A stretch of 63,421 nucleotides of DNA, filler included, from Dicyema japonicum (taxonomy: Eukaryota; Animalia; Dicyemida), in assembly GCA_011109175.1 (NCBI GenBank). It is 12 parts of 11 records of this genome, joined end to end, with 100 filler letters (N's around TTAATTAATTAA, not from the genome) between each part and the next. Parts side by side here need not be neighbours in the genome. Positions count along the whole stretch, not along the records: positions 1 to 26,010 come from RDEW01000090.1; 11 more parts are not named here. One strand, 5' to 3'. Positions within the stretch are counted from its first letter, which is position 1, and each line of letters starts with the position of its first letter. A program made the position numbers and the translations under genes. Below are positions 2,136-50,668 of the stretch, in pieces. The notes below the pieces were generated by a model. That model saw only the letters and a program-made list of their open reading frames with translations, did no database searches and was not told where the DNA came from.

Positions 2136-3369
2136 ACATTGAAATCTGATGGAGTCTATTATTTGAGGCTTATGTTGACAGTTATAAAAGAGTATATATT
2201 TTGATTACTCTAGATGATTTCTTGAATAAGGATTTATTTGAAGCGAAAAAAAAAGATTTTAATTTTTCCACGATTTAACAATAATACTTTAAACTGCACA
2301 TTTTTACAAAATTTATAGTTGAATGTTATACTGTTGAATTAATAATAGAATTGGTTTATTGTAAGATCCATAGTATATTTAAGATGGTATATCTTATACT
2401 AAAAGCAGAACGATTTCTAAATCTCCATATAATGATACTACAAATGTGGATCTACTACTATTATTTTGACTTGTGTTTTTTTTCTTTTTCAGTGTATTTT
2501 ATGAAGTTACAGTTATACCAGAATAATTCTTGGGATATTTTACTGGAAGAAATTTTAATTAAAATTTATTTAGTCAATGACTGTAACCCAAATAATGACC
2601 AAAATTTCCAATTTGGATTTTAGTTGAAGTGATGTAATCCGATGGATACCAGGTGGGAAAGTCAAATATCATATATTGAAAATAACAATATTGTATATGT
2701 ATGCGTTAATCTTTAGATATGTATGAGTTATTCGCTAATGATTATAAAGCATAATATCATAGATTGGACAATAATTATAATGAATGTGGGTTGGCTGGTA
2801 AGCATTCCTTTATTCTATTTCGGCATATATTGCTGATGATGAATATCGGATTTTTAAATTTTATTTTTTGTGTTGGAATAATGAAAAATATAAATTGTTT
2901 GTACGTGGAACGAAACTTCAAATATACTTGGTTAGGTAATCATTATCATTGCGGATTAATTTCACAAAACACACCAATGGATTTTCTATCGAAATATCGT
3001 CTTTTAAATTACAACTTTTCCGTAATGATTCGACTGTTTGATTCAACGGCAATTTAAACAACTTAATTTCAGATGAAGGACGTTTTGTGTAACAATCAAC
3101 CTCTGAAAAATGAAGGAAACATCTAATAATTAGAATTGTATGCGGAGTTATCGGACTGTCAATAGCTGGACTATAACTTTTTTTATATCAAATCGAAATC
3201 TCATTTGGAACTATTTATCAGCAGCTTTATATACAATAATTGGGATTTTTAATTTTGTTGAATTGGTCAAACAATTCGACGTGAATTTTGGAAAAAGAAA
3301 ATTAGTTTTACAGATCGTACTCAAAAAAGAGAATTGCAACGGAAAACATCCGATTAAATGAAACTATGG

Positions 3370-3560
3370 AGAACATAGTGATCGTTTAATGCCATTGGAG
3401 ATACATGCACAACAAATGCGGGTTGAAGAATCAGCAAAACAGCATAGCAGTCGGTTAACCGAATTGAGGAAACATGTACAACACTACGGGCTGAAGAATC
3501 AGCAAAGCTACGCTCGCGACATTCCCACGTGGAGCGTGCAGAGCTGTCTAGTTATTTCTA
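3370..3560 (+). mobile_element. Possible Helitron N-terminal (STPR-like) repeat fragment
   Basis: Repeated RVEESAK/RAEESAK ...SRL motifs across two frames. Motif resemblance only. Confidence 0.3.
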
Positions 3561-3869
3561 AAAATGTTTTAAGATATTAACAAAACCTATATTTACTAAT
3601 TTAATTGTTTATGGCTTTCTGTGAGAGGACAATTTTGTGTGGCAAGGAAGCCAATAGTAGACTTGTTTATGTTTAGGATGCTCAACAATTTACCTTTATG
3701 TTCGATATCCCCTGTGAAAATTAGAAAGAATTATTTTGTATTTGGTGCTGGTATCCAATCAATTTTAAAAGCGTAGAAGGTATGAATCCTATTTTTTTGT
3801 TTCCTCATTCTCCGTAACTGAATCCAATTTAGGAATTTTTTTTAATTTATATTTATTTTTTTAGACAAT

Positions 3870-4085
3870 TAAACAAATGCCAGTTGAGGAAGTTTGCTGC
3901 GTGGATTGCGAACGAATTTCCTCTGAGTATGGCCATTCCAATCTTTTGTCTTAGTCATAACACGTTGTGATTTTCCGTGGGAGTATGGGAATAACGTCAT
4001 TCCATCCGGCCTCTTCCTGTCGCCTCTGTCTAAGCCCAATGGTTTCAATTGGGCCGGAAATCCCGTAGCAAGCATTAAGTCAGCC
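3870..4085 (-). mobile_element. CRE-like non-LTR retrotransposon REL endonuclease / 3' end fragment
   Basis: PLGLDRGDRKRPDGMTLFPYSHGK (PD motif of the REL domain), followed by the shared 3' terminus. Confidence 0.85.
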
Positions 4086-4611
4086 GCACATAGCGGAGAT
4101 CGCTCAAAAAATGATAGAAAAGAAAAGAGCTGGGTATCAAAGTGTAAACAAAATTAAAAAATTATGAGCTATTTACGAGTAAAAGAATATACTAGTAACA
4201 TCTCTGAACATACAAACAAACACTTAGAAGACGGTCCCGAAATCTAAAAATCATAAATGATGTTTTGTTTTCAACTAAAAATAATGGATCACTCAGGATA
4301 GTTGTTTGCTGTCGCATGCAATTAGTAGAGTCTGTCAGGTCTGCTGTATTAATTTTATATTTTATTTGGTATTAATATTAAATATAATAAAGATCACTAA
4401 CCCTGTTAAACAGAATCAGATCGCTCAAAAAATGATAGAAGAGAAAAAAGCTAGCTAATTGAGCGCATTTCCTTGCAAATACATCGCTATTTGGTTGAAG
4501 TTTTCTGTTTGCTTTATTTCTCTTCTTCTCTTCCTACTAAATTAGTGAAAGCAGACGATCTGTACGATGTACAAATGAGGGCAAAAAACAAGATGGCGTA
4601 GGCGAGTAGGG

Positions 4612-4740
4612 TGGCCCCAAAGTTTGGCTCAAGCGAACCTTTTAGGTCTACGCTAAAGAGCTCTTAACTAACTAATTGAAAAAGCAATTATCAAAAACAG
4701 ATATAAAATATATAACTCTAATTATTGTGATCTTTGCTGT
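4612..4740. repeat. 129-bp direct repeat, left copy (pairs with 6252-6380)
   Basis: TGGCCCCAAAG...CTTTGCTGT. 126 of 129 bases identical to 6252-6380, offset 1640. Confidence 0.95.
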
Positions 4741-6251
4741 GAATGAATGAATAAACTTTATTAGGCAAAAACAAATGTTAGTAATCAGGGAAGAACTAAC
4801 TAAGGGCCCTTTCACCGCCTTGCGGCAGCGTTTTCGTGCCATCACTTTCGTCTTCCCCGAGCCTCCTTCTTTAATTTATTTCAAGATCTTTTTAATAACT
4901 TCCTCCGGGTCCTTAAATCAGGGTTTCCTCTTTCCGGCAGCGGCGCTCCATAAGACAATCCTAGAGAATACCGTATTGCCCGCCGCCGAATTTTCCTCAA
5001 GTTGGTGAGGCACTTTTCGCGTTCCTCACTGCAATACCAGGAGTGCGCACCATAGTGAGCATAGGCAGCACCATGGCGTTGAACATTTTGGCCCAGGCAT
5101 CGCGACTCAGCTGAAAAGCCCTCAACGCTCCTAGTCTTTGCACAGCCCGCCTCTTAACGAGGGCGGTGTGCTCCTCGAAACTACACTTGGAGTTGAATGT
5201 CACTCCAAGGTAGCTCGTCCGCCCAGTAACCTCTATAGGTACCCCATAGATGGTTACTCTAGGTATTAAATTATTAGACCGCTTAGGGCGGCCAAAAACT
5301 AACAACTTGCATTTCTCAGGTCTCAGCCTAAGTCCTCTGCTCCCACACCAGCGTATGATTTCATTGACAGCTACTTGAATCCTCCGACACGCTACATCTG
5401 GTTTCCACGAGTGATCCCAGAGTACTATGTCGTCCGCATAGATAGCCATCTCCGTCCTCACATTGGGGTGGGGAGTGTAGACATATATATTGAATAGGGT
5501 AGGGCTTAAAACCGACCCTTGTGGAACTCCCCGGTTAGATCTAAACAAACTAGATCGGCAACCTTTATGCCTTACGTAGTTCATCCGATCCTATAAGAAG
5601 CTTGATAACCAGCTCCTTAGTTCTAGAGAAATTCCTCTTTCTACAAAGGCGCATCGGAGGCCGTCATGCCAACCGAGTCGAACGCCTTCTCCACATCCAG
5701 GAATAGCGCGGCGGTACACTGCTTTTTACTCCTTTCACGAATCTGAGAGCTCAACCTCCAAAGGCAGTCTCCACAGAAACGCCCCTTACGGAATCCCATC
5801 TGAAGGTCCGAGAGGGTGTCTTTTATTATGCATTCCTGGGTGGTATCACTCTCTCTAAGATTTTAGCAACGGCAGGTAACAAGCTTATAGGGCGGTAGCA
5901 ACTAGGCTATTCAGGAGGTTTTCCTGGTTTCCTTAAAAAAACCAGTTCCGCTTCCTTCCAACGCCTAGGAACGTAACCCAACCTGAAGCTACCGTTGTAC
6001 AAACTCACCAAAGTCGCCAAGAGACTTCCAGGTCCTTTCTTGAAAAGGGCCATGGGGATCTTGTCCTGGCCCGGTGCGTTGTTCTTCGATTTTATTATCG
6101 CAGCCCGGACCTCCTCCTCAGTATAAATGCCATTTCGGATTCCCCGAGAGTGCTCTGCTTTCGTCTCCCGTAGAGATGACGTCCTCAATACTTAGTCGAG
6201 CAGTCATCTCGACGAATTTCTCTGGTCGAACTGCAGTGACTGCCCCAAAGC
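4741..6251 (-). mobile_element. 5'-truncated, degenerate L2/Jockey-group LINE (RT domain)
   Basis: APGQDKIP..WKEAELVFLRKPGK, LFLDVEKAFDSV, GVPQGSVLSPTLFNIY, YADD, YLGVTF. Ends in a TTTATTCATTCATTC tail at ~4741-4756. Contains frameshifts. Confidence 0.92.
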
Positions 6252-6380
6252 TGGCCCCAAAGTATAGCTCAAGCGAACCTTTTAGGTCTACGCTAAAGAG
6301 CTCTTAACTAACTAAATGAAAAAGCAATTATCAAAAACAGATATAAAATATATAACTCTAATTATTGTGATCTTTGCTGT
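6252..6380. repeat. 129-bp direct repeat, right copy
   Basis: Matches 4612-4740 with 3 mismatches and abuts the 5'-truncated end of the LINE. Confidence 0.95.
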
Positions 6381-20859: not shown

Positions 20860-21225
20860 GAAGTTATCAAAATGTTGTCATTAATATTTAGGTATCCATG
20901 AATAAGCATATTTCTACTGTATATTTATTGATTTTATGAAGTGAAACATAAAATATATTGAATTTTTTTGATACGAACAAATTAACAATACAAATCATTA
21001 TCATTAAGAAAATGTCAACTGTCACAATAAATATCAGCTAACAGGTTCGCATGAAATGTTATTAACAATATCTAAACACTGAAGAAATATTTACAAAAAA
21101 GCATATTACCACAGTATATTTATTGATTTTATGAAGTGAAACATAAAATATTTTGAATTTTTTGATACGAACAAATGAACAATAGAGATCATAACCATTA
21201 AGAAAATGTCAACTGTAAAAAATAT
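20860..21225. repeat. Two-copy ~195-bp tandem duplication
   Basis: GTATATTTATTGATTTTATGAAGTGAAACATAAAATA...AAGAAAATGTCAACTGT starts at 20919 and 21114. Confidence 0.85.
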
Positions 21226-46820: not shown

Positions 46821-49800
46821 AACGCGGTGGTGGAGGAGAGTGCTCGACCGGACTACTGCATGAAGGATATAATGGACGCCATTGGGAACGAGAGGATCCT
46901 CAACGACATTCTTGGTATCAGGGACGAGGGTAGTCTGGTATGGCCGAGGGTAGATCCCGGGGAGGACTTCGTCAGCGAGCCTCCATTTTCATCCCCCAGG
47001 TCGTCGTCGGTGACTCCACCACAAGTGGCACTTTCTCAGTGCACGCCTTCTCCTAAACGAAAGGTCTCGGAGAAACGGAGAAAGATGGTTAGTACGATTT
47101 CGGGAAATCCGCCGACTCCATTTGCTATTCCAAGGTATATAATTATTCCGATCCACAAAAGACGTGGGCCTTACTCAAAAACTAGATCGAGGCTGCAATC
47201 GAATTGTAGTTCATTCTGCAGTGATGCTCTTGATAAGTCTACGAAATGATGTGCTCTTTTTTACTTTTTAAAAAATCATGTATTCGGTTGAAAATGTAGT
47301 TAGTTGCTATCGTGTAAAATATTATTCTTTGAGGATGTCGAGTTTCATTTGAATTATAAAAAAATCCGCCCTCCCCATTTTCCTTATATGAAGCGGGTTT
47401 AAACCCTACGGGCAGGGCCAGCCTGCCGTCAGTTCGAAACATAGCAAACTCAAATTTACAGCGTCTCAAACTATCAGCTAGCCAACCATTTTTATTTGAC
47501 CATTTTTGTTAATAACATTAGTCCCAATATATTTTATTTATTTTCTTTACATTTTTATGGATACAATAATCAAAATATCTAAGACCCAGTTTACGAAAAG
47601 ATTGATTTTCAATTACCCCGAGATTGCAAACAAACGATTTTCTAGCAGCTGCTCGTTCGCAAAAGTCATTGATCTTCGTAGAAATCCGTACTCCGATTTC
47701 AAAAAAACTCACGTAGACGCTACTGAGACACCATTTTTGGAAAAATGAAACAAGAAGACGGACTCCGGAAATGAGGTGTAGTTTTTGATTTTTGGCTTCT
47801 CTGTCTTGTTATAGTAACCGCCGATATTTAACCAGTAGTCTAACAGAATAGTCGTGTTTAATACTTGGTCAGAAAACTTGCGTCAAATACAATCAGAAAA
47901 CTCCCTTCGAAGTTTATGCCAATCGTATTTACTTGCTATGCCACATTATCTCGGCATGACAAACCCTCGAAAGCAAAAATCGTCACATTCAGAGTAATCG
48001 ACTGATAAATACACAAATCAAAAGCACTACAACTAATTCTTATTTGTGAAACTGTCTGACATCGTATCGACACGAACGTAAAATAGTCATTCCATAAAAT
48101 GCTTATAAAGAGTTAGTGTTAAAAGTAGAGTTTATTTATATAAATTAAATGTTAGTTATAGTCATCTGGGTCGTAGTTTGGAGGTAGATCTTCCTCTCTG
48201 ATCACTGAATAATGAATATTGTCAAAGACCTCGGTAGCGATTGCTGTATCGACCTTTTCTGGATGGGCGACTGTTCAATCTATATTGGTCGGCCATCAGT
48301 CCAGTGAAAGCTATGAGATTTGTCTCAGGGAACATAACTACCACTTAATGTTAGAAAAGCAGTCAATCCTAGTGCAGGGTAGTCATACAGGCCATTCTTA
48401 ATGAACTGTACGACTATGGTTACTATACATACAAAATTACATTTCTGGGTACTGGAGGACATTGTGCACACCACAACGATTTGGATTTTAATTCTATTAT
48501 TGTCATATATTTATTAAAATAATTAAATTGACAAAAGTATAATATTGAAAACTATACTTAGTCAGGAAAACAATCCTAATATGTGCAACTGGTTACATTT
48601 TTTAAATGTTGGTGAACCTAAAGTTTTTTCCATTGTCACTTTAATTCCAAAGGAATACAAATAAAATCAGATGCTAGCCATGTAACGAACAACAGCAACT
48701 GAGGTTCGCTGGAAAAGCCAACTCGTCTCCCTCCGGTCGTTTGTATTCGATGAGATTCTCCTACCAATGTCAGTGAGAAGTTTAGTCGCAGCCTTGCCCA
48801 CGATTCCAGAGGTTTCGAAAAATTGAGTTTCGACAGACATTTTATTGTTAAAAATGACATAATCAGAAAAGTCATTCGAAATTGTGACTTATAAAAATAA
48901 CAACAAAATTTTTTTTTGCGGAAAACTTTAGAAAATGATAGACAGCAATGAGAAAACAAGATTTTTAAAAGTCTACGATCTCGCAAGTCCGTAGTCTATA
49001 GGGAGAAGTTGTCGAATTCTCGTTTCAACACGGTGGCAGAGGAGAGTGCTCGACCGGACTACTGCATGAAGGATATAATGGACGCCATTGGGAACGAGAG
49101 GATCCTCAACGACATTCTTGGTATCAGGGACGAGAGTAGTCTGGTATGGCCGAGGATAGATCACAGAGAGGACTTCGTCATCTATCCTCCATTTTCATCC
49201 CCCAGGTCGTCGCCGGTGACTCCACGACAAGTGGCACTTTCTCAGTGCACGCCTTCTCCCAAACGAAAGGTCTCGGAGAAACGGAGAAAGATGGTTAACA
49301 CGATTTCGGGGAATCCGCCTTTGCTATTCCAGAGGATATAATTATTCTGTTGCCCAAAAGACGTGGGCCTTACTCAAAAACTAGATCGAGGCTCCAATGA
49401 ATTGTAGTTCCTTCTGCAGTGATGCTCTTGATAAATCTACGAAATGATGTGCTCTTTCGGTTGAAAATGTAGTTAGTTGCTATCGTGTAAAATATTGTTC
49501 TTTGAGGATATCGAGTTTAATTTGAATATTTACTTTATAAAAAAATCCGCCCTCCCCATTTTCCTTATTTGAAGCGGGTTTAAACCCTACGGGCAGGGCC
49601 AGCCTGCCATCAGTTCGAAACATAGCAAACTCAAATTTACAGCGTCTCAAACCATCAGCTAGCCAGCCATTTTTATTTAACCATTTTTGTTAATAACATT
49701 AGTCCATATATTTTATTTATTTTCTTTACATTTTTATGGATACAATAATCAAAATATCTAAGACCCATTCTACGAAAAGATTGATTTTCAATTACCCCGA

Positions 49801-50668
49801 GATTGCAAACAAACGTTTTCCTAGCAGCTGCTCGTTCGTAAAAGTCATTGATCTTCGTAAAAATCCGTACTCCGATTTCAAAAAAACTCACGTAGACGCT
49901 ACTGAGACACCATTTTTAGAAAAATGAAACAAGAAGACTGACTCCGGAAAAGAGGTGTAGTTTTTGATTTTTGGCTTCTCTGCCTTGTTATAGTAACCGC
50001 CGATATTTAACCAGTAGTCTAACAGAATAGTCGTGTTTAATACTTGGAATACTTGGTCAGAAAACTTGCTTCAAATACAATCAGAAAACTCCCTTCGAAG
50101 TTTATGCCAATCGTATTTACTTGCAATGCCACATTACCTCAGCATGACAAACCCTCGAAAGCAAAAATCGTCACATTCAGAGTAATCGACTAATAAATAC
50201 ACAAATCAAAAGCACTACAACTAATTCTTATTTGTGAAACTGTCTGACATCGTATTGACACGAACGTAAAATAGTCATTCCATAAAATGCTTATAAAGAG
50301 TTAGTGTTAAAAGTAGATTTTATTTATATAAATTAAATGTTAGTTATAGTCATCTGGGTCGTAGTTTGGAGGTAGATCTTCCTCTCTGATCACTGAATAA
50401 TGAATATTGTCAAAGACCTCGGTAGCGATTGCTGTATCGACCTTTTCTGGATGGGCGACTGTTCAATCTATATTGGTCGGCCATCAGTCCAGTGAAAGCT
50501 ATGAGATTTGTCTCAGGGAACATAACTACCACTTAATGTTAGAAAAGCAGTCAATCCTAGTGCAGGGTAGTCATACAGGCCATTCTTAATGAACTGTACG
50601 ACTATGGTTACTATACATACAAAATTACATTTCTGGGTACTGGAGGACATTGTGCACACCACAACGAT
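46821..50668 (+). repeat. ~2.2-kb tandem segmental duplication carrying gene-like ORFs (46821-48480 / 49020-50668)
   Basis: Offsets 2206 to 2188. Paired ORFs 46827/49009, 47506/49736 and 48219/50407 (the last pair identical). Confidence 0.95.

Follow-up and report, generated by a model that had tools for sequence, protein, structure and literature searches.

The window, by which is meant the whole stretch of Dicyema japonicum DNA that was analysed (63,421 nucleotides, filler included), carries on scaffold C365 a minus-strand LINE fragment of 1511 bp from a family designated here LINE-A. The fragment is enclosed by two direct repeats of 129 bp (Table 1). A repeat search and a pairwise alignment that included the flanks found 126 of the 129 positions identical, and identity dropped abruptly at all four outer and inner edges. 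The three mismatches were at 4624, 4626, and 4676; the first two, numbered here in the tail-side copy, fall 12 to 14 nt from the 5′ junction when placed in the other copy. There were no runs of N between the copies, and no gene-like open reading frames were found near the LINE. These results confirmed the preliminary description, in which 129-bp repeats were said to bracket a LINE exactly, one copy touching the (ATTC)3 tail and the other touching the truncation point. Chance was considered as the origin of a 98% match that is 129 bp long and borders an insert with base precision, and was dismissed.

Table 1. Features of the window locus, and repeats flanking LINE-A copies at this and three further loci
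Feature	Location	Strand	Basis or remarks
LINE-A copy, 5′-truncated, frame-broken	4741-6251	-	RVT_1 matches; 93% identity to longer copies
Microsatellite 3′ tail, (ATTC)3	4741-4752	-	Sequence read; directly against 4740
First bases of truncated LINE, including 9-nt stretch	6239-6251	-	Same motif in ten other members
Putative TSD copy, LINE 3′ tail side	4612-4740		3′ half of element X plus 64 bp of unique DNA; alignment
Putative TSD copy, LINE 5′ truncation side	6252-6380		Repeat search and alignment
Element X, older multicopy repeat, 3′ part	4538-4676	+	Homology in 28 loci spans this interval
Flanking repeat, window	C365		129 bp; copies 97.7% identical
Flanking repeat, L042	C318		108 bp; copies 92.6% identical
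Flanking repeat, L049	C223		196 bp; copies 95.4% identical
Flanking repeat, L046	C310		467 bp; copies 97.2% identical

The LINE-A copy in the window matches positions ∼2726 to 4253 of a 4262-bp full-length reference member and retains the reverse transcriptase (RT) domain and the 3′ untranslated region. Its broken reading frames match Pfam RVT_1 (E value, 3.6e−15), and this match, the alignment to the reference, and the (ATTC)3 at 4740 bore out the earlier identification of a 5′-truncated LINE with an (ATTC)n-like tail. LINE-A is present in a few dozen copies in the genome. These begin at many internal positions but share one 3′ end, composed of a conserved GCCTAATAAA motif, a few further bases, and then two to four units of 4- to 5-mers (TCATT, TCCGT, or ATCGT); no long terminal repeats were present. 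Full-length members are ∼4.3 kb, for example at L061 (5487-9831) and L062 (1663-5924, minus strand). In the L061 member, ORF1 encodes 542 amino acids with CCHC zinc knuckles (zf-CCHC_6 and zf-CCHC), and ORF2 encodes an APE endonuclease (Exo_endo_phos and Exo_endo_phos_2; L061:7119-8627) N-terminal to the RT (RVT_1; E value, 1.4e−40). The 5′ truncation has removed the APE domain from the window copy. In the ∼100 amino acids remaining C-terminal to the L061 RT, neither a nuclease nor any other Pfam domain was identified, and hence no restriction-enzyme-like endonuclease (REL). The nearest named relatives were annotated "mobile element jockey" (∼36% identity), a name assigned automatically. Both the CCHC-containing ORF1 and the use of a microsatellite instead of a poly(A) tail agree with the Jockey/CR1/L2 supergroup, and the assignment is made at supergroup level only. 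Judged from these sequence features, the element in the window is a 5′-truncated APE-type LINE with a microsatellite tail.

At L061:3656-9831 (G000:C343:140655-146830), an internally deleted, tailed LINE-A abuts the 5′ end of a full-length copy in head-to-tail orientation, and this arrangement defines the true 5′ end of the family. The cluster of LINE-A copies on C343, which has a period of ∼7.2 kb, was also considered as a possible long-duplication case and was rejected, as the LINE is cut at both ends there and is a passenger of a segmental array.

The complete 129-mer gave exactly two full-length matches in the 67.5-Mb genome (67,542,437 bases in 377 contigs), and no similarity between the 129-mer and LINE-A was found. 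The caveat raised in the preliminary description, that the 129-mer could itself be a multicopy element or part of the LINE consensus, applied only to bases 1 to 65, which are the inner part of an older multicopy repeat, element X; the whole 129-mer occurs just twice and is unrelated to the LINE. Element X is ∼200 to 215 bp at full length and ends in a TAAC-type tail. With bases 1 to 65 of the 129-mer as the match region, at least 40 scored matches and at least 78 candidates were obtained in the genome, and copies of X lie around 1362-1574 in loci L003 to L030. The duplication edge falls in the middle of X, and the duplicated segment extends 64 bp beyond the end of X into unique DNA. As the duplication starts within X and X continues through the edge, this edge is not a repeat terminus. 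X was already in the target before the LINE arrived, and an identity of the 129-mer as an independent multicopy element, although partly true, leaves the pair unexplained. In appearance, X is retroposon-like, resembling either the 3′ terminus of a further non-LTR element or a short interspersed element (SINE). An allelic single-copy site for the window insertion was not seen, and the whole 129-mer had no further genomic match. On alignment and copy number, the window repeats are supported as behaving like a target site duplication (TSD).

The recurrence of such repeats within the family, which had been proposed as a check, was assessed by comparing upstream with downstream flanks in all LINE-A copies whose two junctions were covered by the retrieved loci (11 in addition to the window copy). 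Long abutting flanking repeats of 108, 196, and 467 bp were found at L042, L049, and L046, respectively. The check was therefore positive for 3 of the 11 other copies, or 4 of 12 if the window copy that prompted the search is included. No long flanking repeat was detected in the other eight (L041, L044, L047, L050, L052, L054, L061, and L063), which showed at most a few matching bases. At each of the four positive loci, one repeat touches the 3′ tail of the insert, the other touches its 5′ end, and the DNA beyond them is unrelated; a complete 3′ end with its microsatellite tail lies directly against the duplicated segment in every case. The four duplicated segments are unrelated to each other and to LINE-A, and in a genome search the whole segments from L042, L046, and L049 were each found at their own locus alone.

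The segments at L046 and L049 include an APE-coding piece of an older LINE, LINE-B, that extends past the duplication edge. An explanation of these edges as repeat termini was rejected, since longer queries and translation showed LINE-B running through them. LINE-B is a second abundant LINE family with more than 500 candidate copies and recognisable APE motifs, and its fragments at L046:2378-3100 and L049:2292-2500 (minus strand) were the targets of LINE-A insertion. The most diverged duplication accompanies the most diverged LINE, with the L042 element sharing 87.6% identity with the reference versus 92.8 to 96.9% for the others. L042 is also the least clean of the long-duplication cases. A third copy of 88 bp of the segment is present at L042:17-104 (G000:C318:388164-388251), 1.28 kb from the second copy; its left half follows the sequence of one of the other two copies and its right half that of the remaining one. 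The 1278 bp that separate this third copy from the second are low-copy sequence, for which a single paralogue (71%) was found on C334, and were not obviously a transposon.

At the 5′ junction in the window, a 9-nt stretch at 6242-6250 matches exactly the terminal bases of the upstream duplication copy. The preliminary description had taken this GCCCCAAAG echo for a template-jump scar. The 9-nt match is real, but the motif occurs with one or two differences at the same internal position in ten other LINE-A copies; it is thus conserved LINE sequence, and its origin as a nontemplated scar was rejected. An identity of 9 nt between target and LINE is too much for chance and points to homology that may have helped to place the joining of the cDNA. 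Both copies of the motif are retained side by side, whereas plain annealing and extension predicts that one would be kept, so this detail is unexplained by that model. The 5′ junctions at L046 and L049 showed 2 to 5 nt of ordinary microhomology.

A similar duplication was found incidentally with a different element in L014, a locus that had been retrieved for its copy of X. W250 is an interspersed element of 250 bp, for which at least 1,682 candidate copies (95 to 98% alike) were counted; its 5′ end is constant, while its 3′ end is ragged and varies by a few bases. The W250 copy in L014 (1875-2350; G000:C328, about 49378-49853) is flanked by a 112-bp duplication. Three paralogues of this locus, L021 (1081-1192), L015, and L025, contain the 112 bp once and lack the W250 insert, with boundaries that agree to the base. 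This was the only case with an empty site, which is paralogous rather than allelic. An Rfam scan of the window region and W250 returned chance-level matches only, and no tRNA, 5S, or 7SL origin was identified.

A much longer duplication may be represented on scaffold C35 (G000:C35:872100-888999; loci L065 and L062), where an array has the arrangement [S][full-length LINE-A][S][LINE-A][S...], S being 2.65 kb and the repeats of the array 98 to 99% alike. The left edge of the array is no more than 7 bp away from the junction at which the LINE tail gives way to S. Read from this edge, the array may fit a duplication of 2.65 kb that was later expanded by a single unequal exchange.

The reading that we favor, with a probability of about 0.7, is that the 129-bp repeats are a genuine long TSD generated when LINE-A inserted by target-primed reverse transcription. 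Four lines of direct observation lie behind it: how the insertion is built, that the duplicated segment is unique, that the pattern recurs in the family, and which domains the element encodes. The anatomy implies strand breaks 108 to 467 bp apart, with LINE cDNA primed at one of them. The tail is intact and immediately adjoins the segment in all cases, as is characteristic of target-primed reverse transcription that starts at a nick. For the order of the nicks and the cause of the distant second break, we infer the following. APE would have cut, at the present 6380|6381, the strand that is complementary to the sense strand of the LINE, and the freed 3′ end would have primed cDNA synthesis on the microsatellite tail of the LINE transcript. 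Reverse transcription would have halted after ∼1.5 kb. The other strand would then have been broken 129 bp downstream, at what is now 4611|4612, rather than a few bases away. The broken strand end could have been joined to the cDNA beside the 9-nt homology, after which both single-stranded 129-bp copies would have been filled in. The source of the second break was more likely a nick or gap left by host replication or repair than the element endonuclease, given that the lengths are not fixed (108 to 467 bp, perhaps 2.65 kb) and that the unrelated W250 does likewise. The nucleosome-scale nick spacing mentioned for R9 in the preliminary description found no clear support here, as the lengths vary (108 to 467 bp).

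Host activity could also account for the whole structure. A staggered break, either a nick pair or a gap of 100 to 500 bp, would be filled in and LINE cDNA captured in it, and the duplication would then be a property of Dicyema repair or replication. Variable lengths are expected where no ruler is encoded by the element, and a duplication of the same size accompanies the different element W250. Tandem duplications of similar size that lack any insert were also identified elsewhere, lying back to back at L007:2812-3046, L050:2350-2538 and 2853-3106, L011:207-504, and L026:1060-1326. Those with periods of 93, 116, and 126 bp are 100% identical, and those with periods of 133 and 146 bp are 95.5 to 98.7% identical. 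The window itself holds a further direct repeat of 134 bp (20901-21034 and 21096-21225; 89% identity) with a period of 195 bp, in which the copies are separated by a 61-bp unrelated spacer; no element was recognised in these 61 bp. The sizes of both the insert-free tandems and this 195-bp period would be in keeping with host breakage, but the 100% identical tandems may be gap-closing artefacts, or they may be very recent duplications in the long-TSD size range. Further, endonuclease-independent captures of L1 usually lack intact tails, whereas here a complete, tailed 3′ end lies exactly against the segment in every case, a hallmark of cDNA synthesis primed on the tail by a nicked end. Capture at a host break is accordingly judged unlikely as the explanation of the window locus.

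An assembly artefact would require that a heterozygous LINE with an ordinary short TSD was mis-joined during merging, gap closing, or the merging of haplotypes, so that one flank was written twice. The D. japonicum assembly (67.5 Mb in 377 scaffolds, 49% repeats) has a heterozygosity of 1.24% and was produced with Platanus and Falcon, merged, and then processed with SSPACE, GapCloser, and HaploMerger (Lu et al. 2019, PMC6736024). Such a hybrid pipeline, the heterozygosity, and the 100% identical tandem duplications of about read length noted above make errors of this kind conceivable. However, both junctions, that of tail with segment and that of segment with the LINE 5′ end, would need to have been invented. 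The copies differ by 2.3 to 7.4%, compared with a heterozygosity of 1.24%, with no N runs between them, and those flanking LINEs are 0.7 to 2.4 kb apart and separated by the LINE. The same exact anatomy was seen at five independent loci with five different lengths, divergence was largest at the oldest LINE copy, and at L014 the duplicated segment is defined to the base by three paralogous empty sites. We therefore regard an artefact as quite improbable. Short tandem duplications do occur in this genome, but a pre-existing 129-bp tandem with a LINE landing at its junction is very improbable, as is a later duplication of the flank across the LINE, since the former needs a LINE to have hit the junction to the base at either end on four or five separate occasions, at loci that are unrelated, and is at odds with the single copy carried before insertion by the paralogues L021, L015, and L025, while the latter would need to begin precisely at the tail and to stop precisely at the truncation point.

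With LINE-A insertion and a long TSD as the preferred reading, a close known parallel is ZfL2-2, an L2-clade LINE of zebrafish. In DT40 cells, 1 of 25 ZfL2-2 insertions had a TSD of 1228 bp (Suzuki et al. 2009, PMC2666801), and retrotransposition of L2-clade LINEs is recognised to yield such long TSDs (L-TSDs, defined as those of >20 bp) as a rare product. As in the ZfL2-2 case, an APE-type element with a microsatellite-like tail is abutted at both ends by a target duplicate of a length far above the usual few bases, and the ZfL2-2 L-TSD was attributed to breakage of the second strand at a point far downstream of where the first had been nicked, as is proposed here for LINE-A. The two differ in that the ZfL2-2 example was 1 of 25 assay insertions in which the usual TSD was ≤20 bp, whereas for LINE-A it is 4 of 12 fixed genomic copies, in another animal lineage and in a family placed at supergroup level only. 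Against a rate of 1 in 25, the frequency of long repeats gave a binomial P of 0.008, while Fisher's exact test gave P values of 0.076 without and 0.03 with the window copy in this small sample. The excess over the ZfL2-2 assay rate is thus only modestly significant, and long TSDs appear to be unusually common in LINE-A.

Long and variable duplications are also made by Dualen-4b_cRei of Chlamydomonas reinhardtii, in which more than half of new insertions carried duplications of >50 bp with a median of 900 bp (Lopez-Cortegano et al. 2023, PMC9977147). LINE-A resembles it in producing flanking duplications of variable length that are read as long TSDs. The authors ascribed those of Dualen to its pair of endonucleases, REL and APE (PMC9977147). 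Dualen is from a green alga, makes longer duplications, and encodes APE and REL in one ORF, unlike LINE-A, which has APE and RT only; with no second nuclease in LINE-A, the explanation given for Dualen is not applicable to it. The R9 element of bdelloid rotifers is a REL-type element that inserts at one site in rDNA with a fixed TSD of 126 bp (Gladyshev and Arkhipova 2009, cited in PMC9977147, PMC2861651). The duplication in the window is nearly the same length as that reported there for R9. R9 differs from LINE-A in being REL-type, rDNA-specific, and fixed in TSD length, since LINE-A is APE-type, lacks a C-terminal REL, and is flanked by duplications of 108 to 467 bp at target sites of unrelated sequence.

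The premise of the preliminary description, that TSDs of APE-type LINEs are usually short and a long one is unusual, agrees with the ordinary ranges, which are ∼15 bp for L1 and ∼5 bp for ZfL2-1/CR1-1_DR (CR1/L2-type) (PMC4245944) and 10 to 12 bp for RTE (PMC6007223). It was too strict in that long TSDs are precedented, singly in ZfL2-2 (1228 bp) and as a routine outcome in Dualen-4b. Long TSDs of the Caenorhabditis elegans RTE-1 element found no confirmation in a search of the accessible literature. LINE-A itself is like ordinary APE-type LINEs in its architecture and integration pathway, and the 8 of 11 copies that lack a long TSD show at most a few bases, as in CR1/L2. The window copy and three others exceed the usual ranges 10- to 50-fold.

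The structure in the window therefore belongs to a known class of outcome and does not represent a new kind of mechanism. The apparent novelty lies in how often long TSDs occur in an animal LINE family with APE as its only endonuclease (4 of 12 copies; 3 of 11 if the window copy is left aside). The break of the second strand during LINE integration is a still-open step of target-primed reverse transcription. To our knowledge, the length of the TSD is the sole fossil record of this break, and it is normally narrow and clade-specific. If an APE-only family does generate TSDs of 100 to 470 bp in about one-third of its copies, and an unrelated short element does the same, this would show that the host, and not the element, is able to determine where the second break falls, and the explanation that two endonucleases are needed in Dualen would be weakened. 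Insertions with long TSDs would copy host sequence as a by-product and supply substrates for unequal exchange, through which tandem arrays could form locally in the compact genome of a parasite. Tentatively, and with the balance of probability against it, this could be a general property of D. japonicum: the second strand would routinely break hundreds of bases from the first nick whichever element inserts (LINE-A or W250), and a large share of insertions would carry duplications of 100 to 500 bp, occasionally of kilobases, that seed tandem arrays by unequal exchange (as on C35) and contribute to the 49% repeat content.

Two further observations concern the LINE-A coding region. A 40-bp stretch of the reference just upstream of the YADD codons, positions 3520 to 3562, contains the starts of four copies and the points where two others resume after an internal deletion (L046, L047, L049, L054, L050, and L052). 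This clustering suggests that the stretch may be a preferred stop or template-jump point for the RT. The best database relative of the LINE-A RT was a protein annotated in Octopus sinensis, LOC115231655 (P0001, 209 amino acids), with 54% identity to the translation of L061:8579-9703, while all other relatives shared ≤40% identity. Octopuses are hosts of dicyemids, and the O. sinensis relative could be dicyemid DNA in the octopus assembly or the result of a transfer of the element between host and parasite. The octopus protein starts at the same truncation hot spot.
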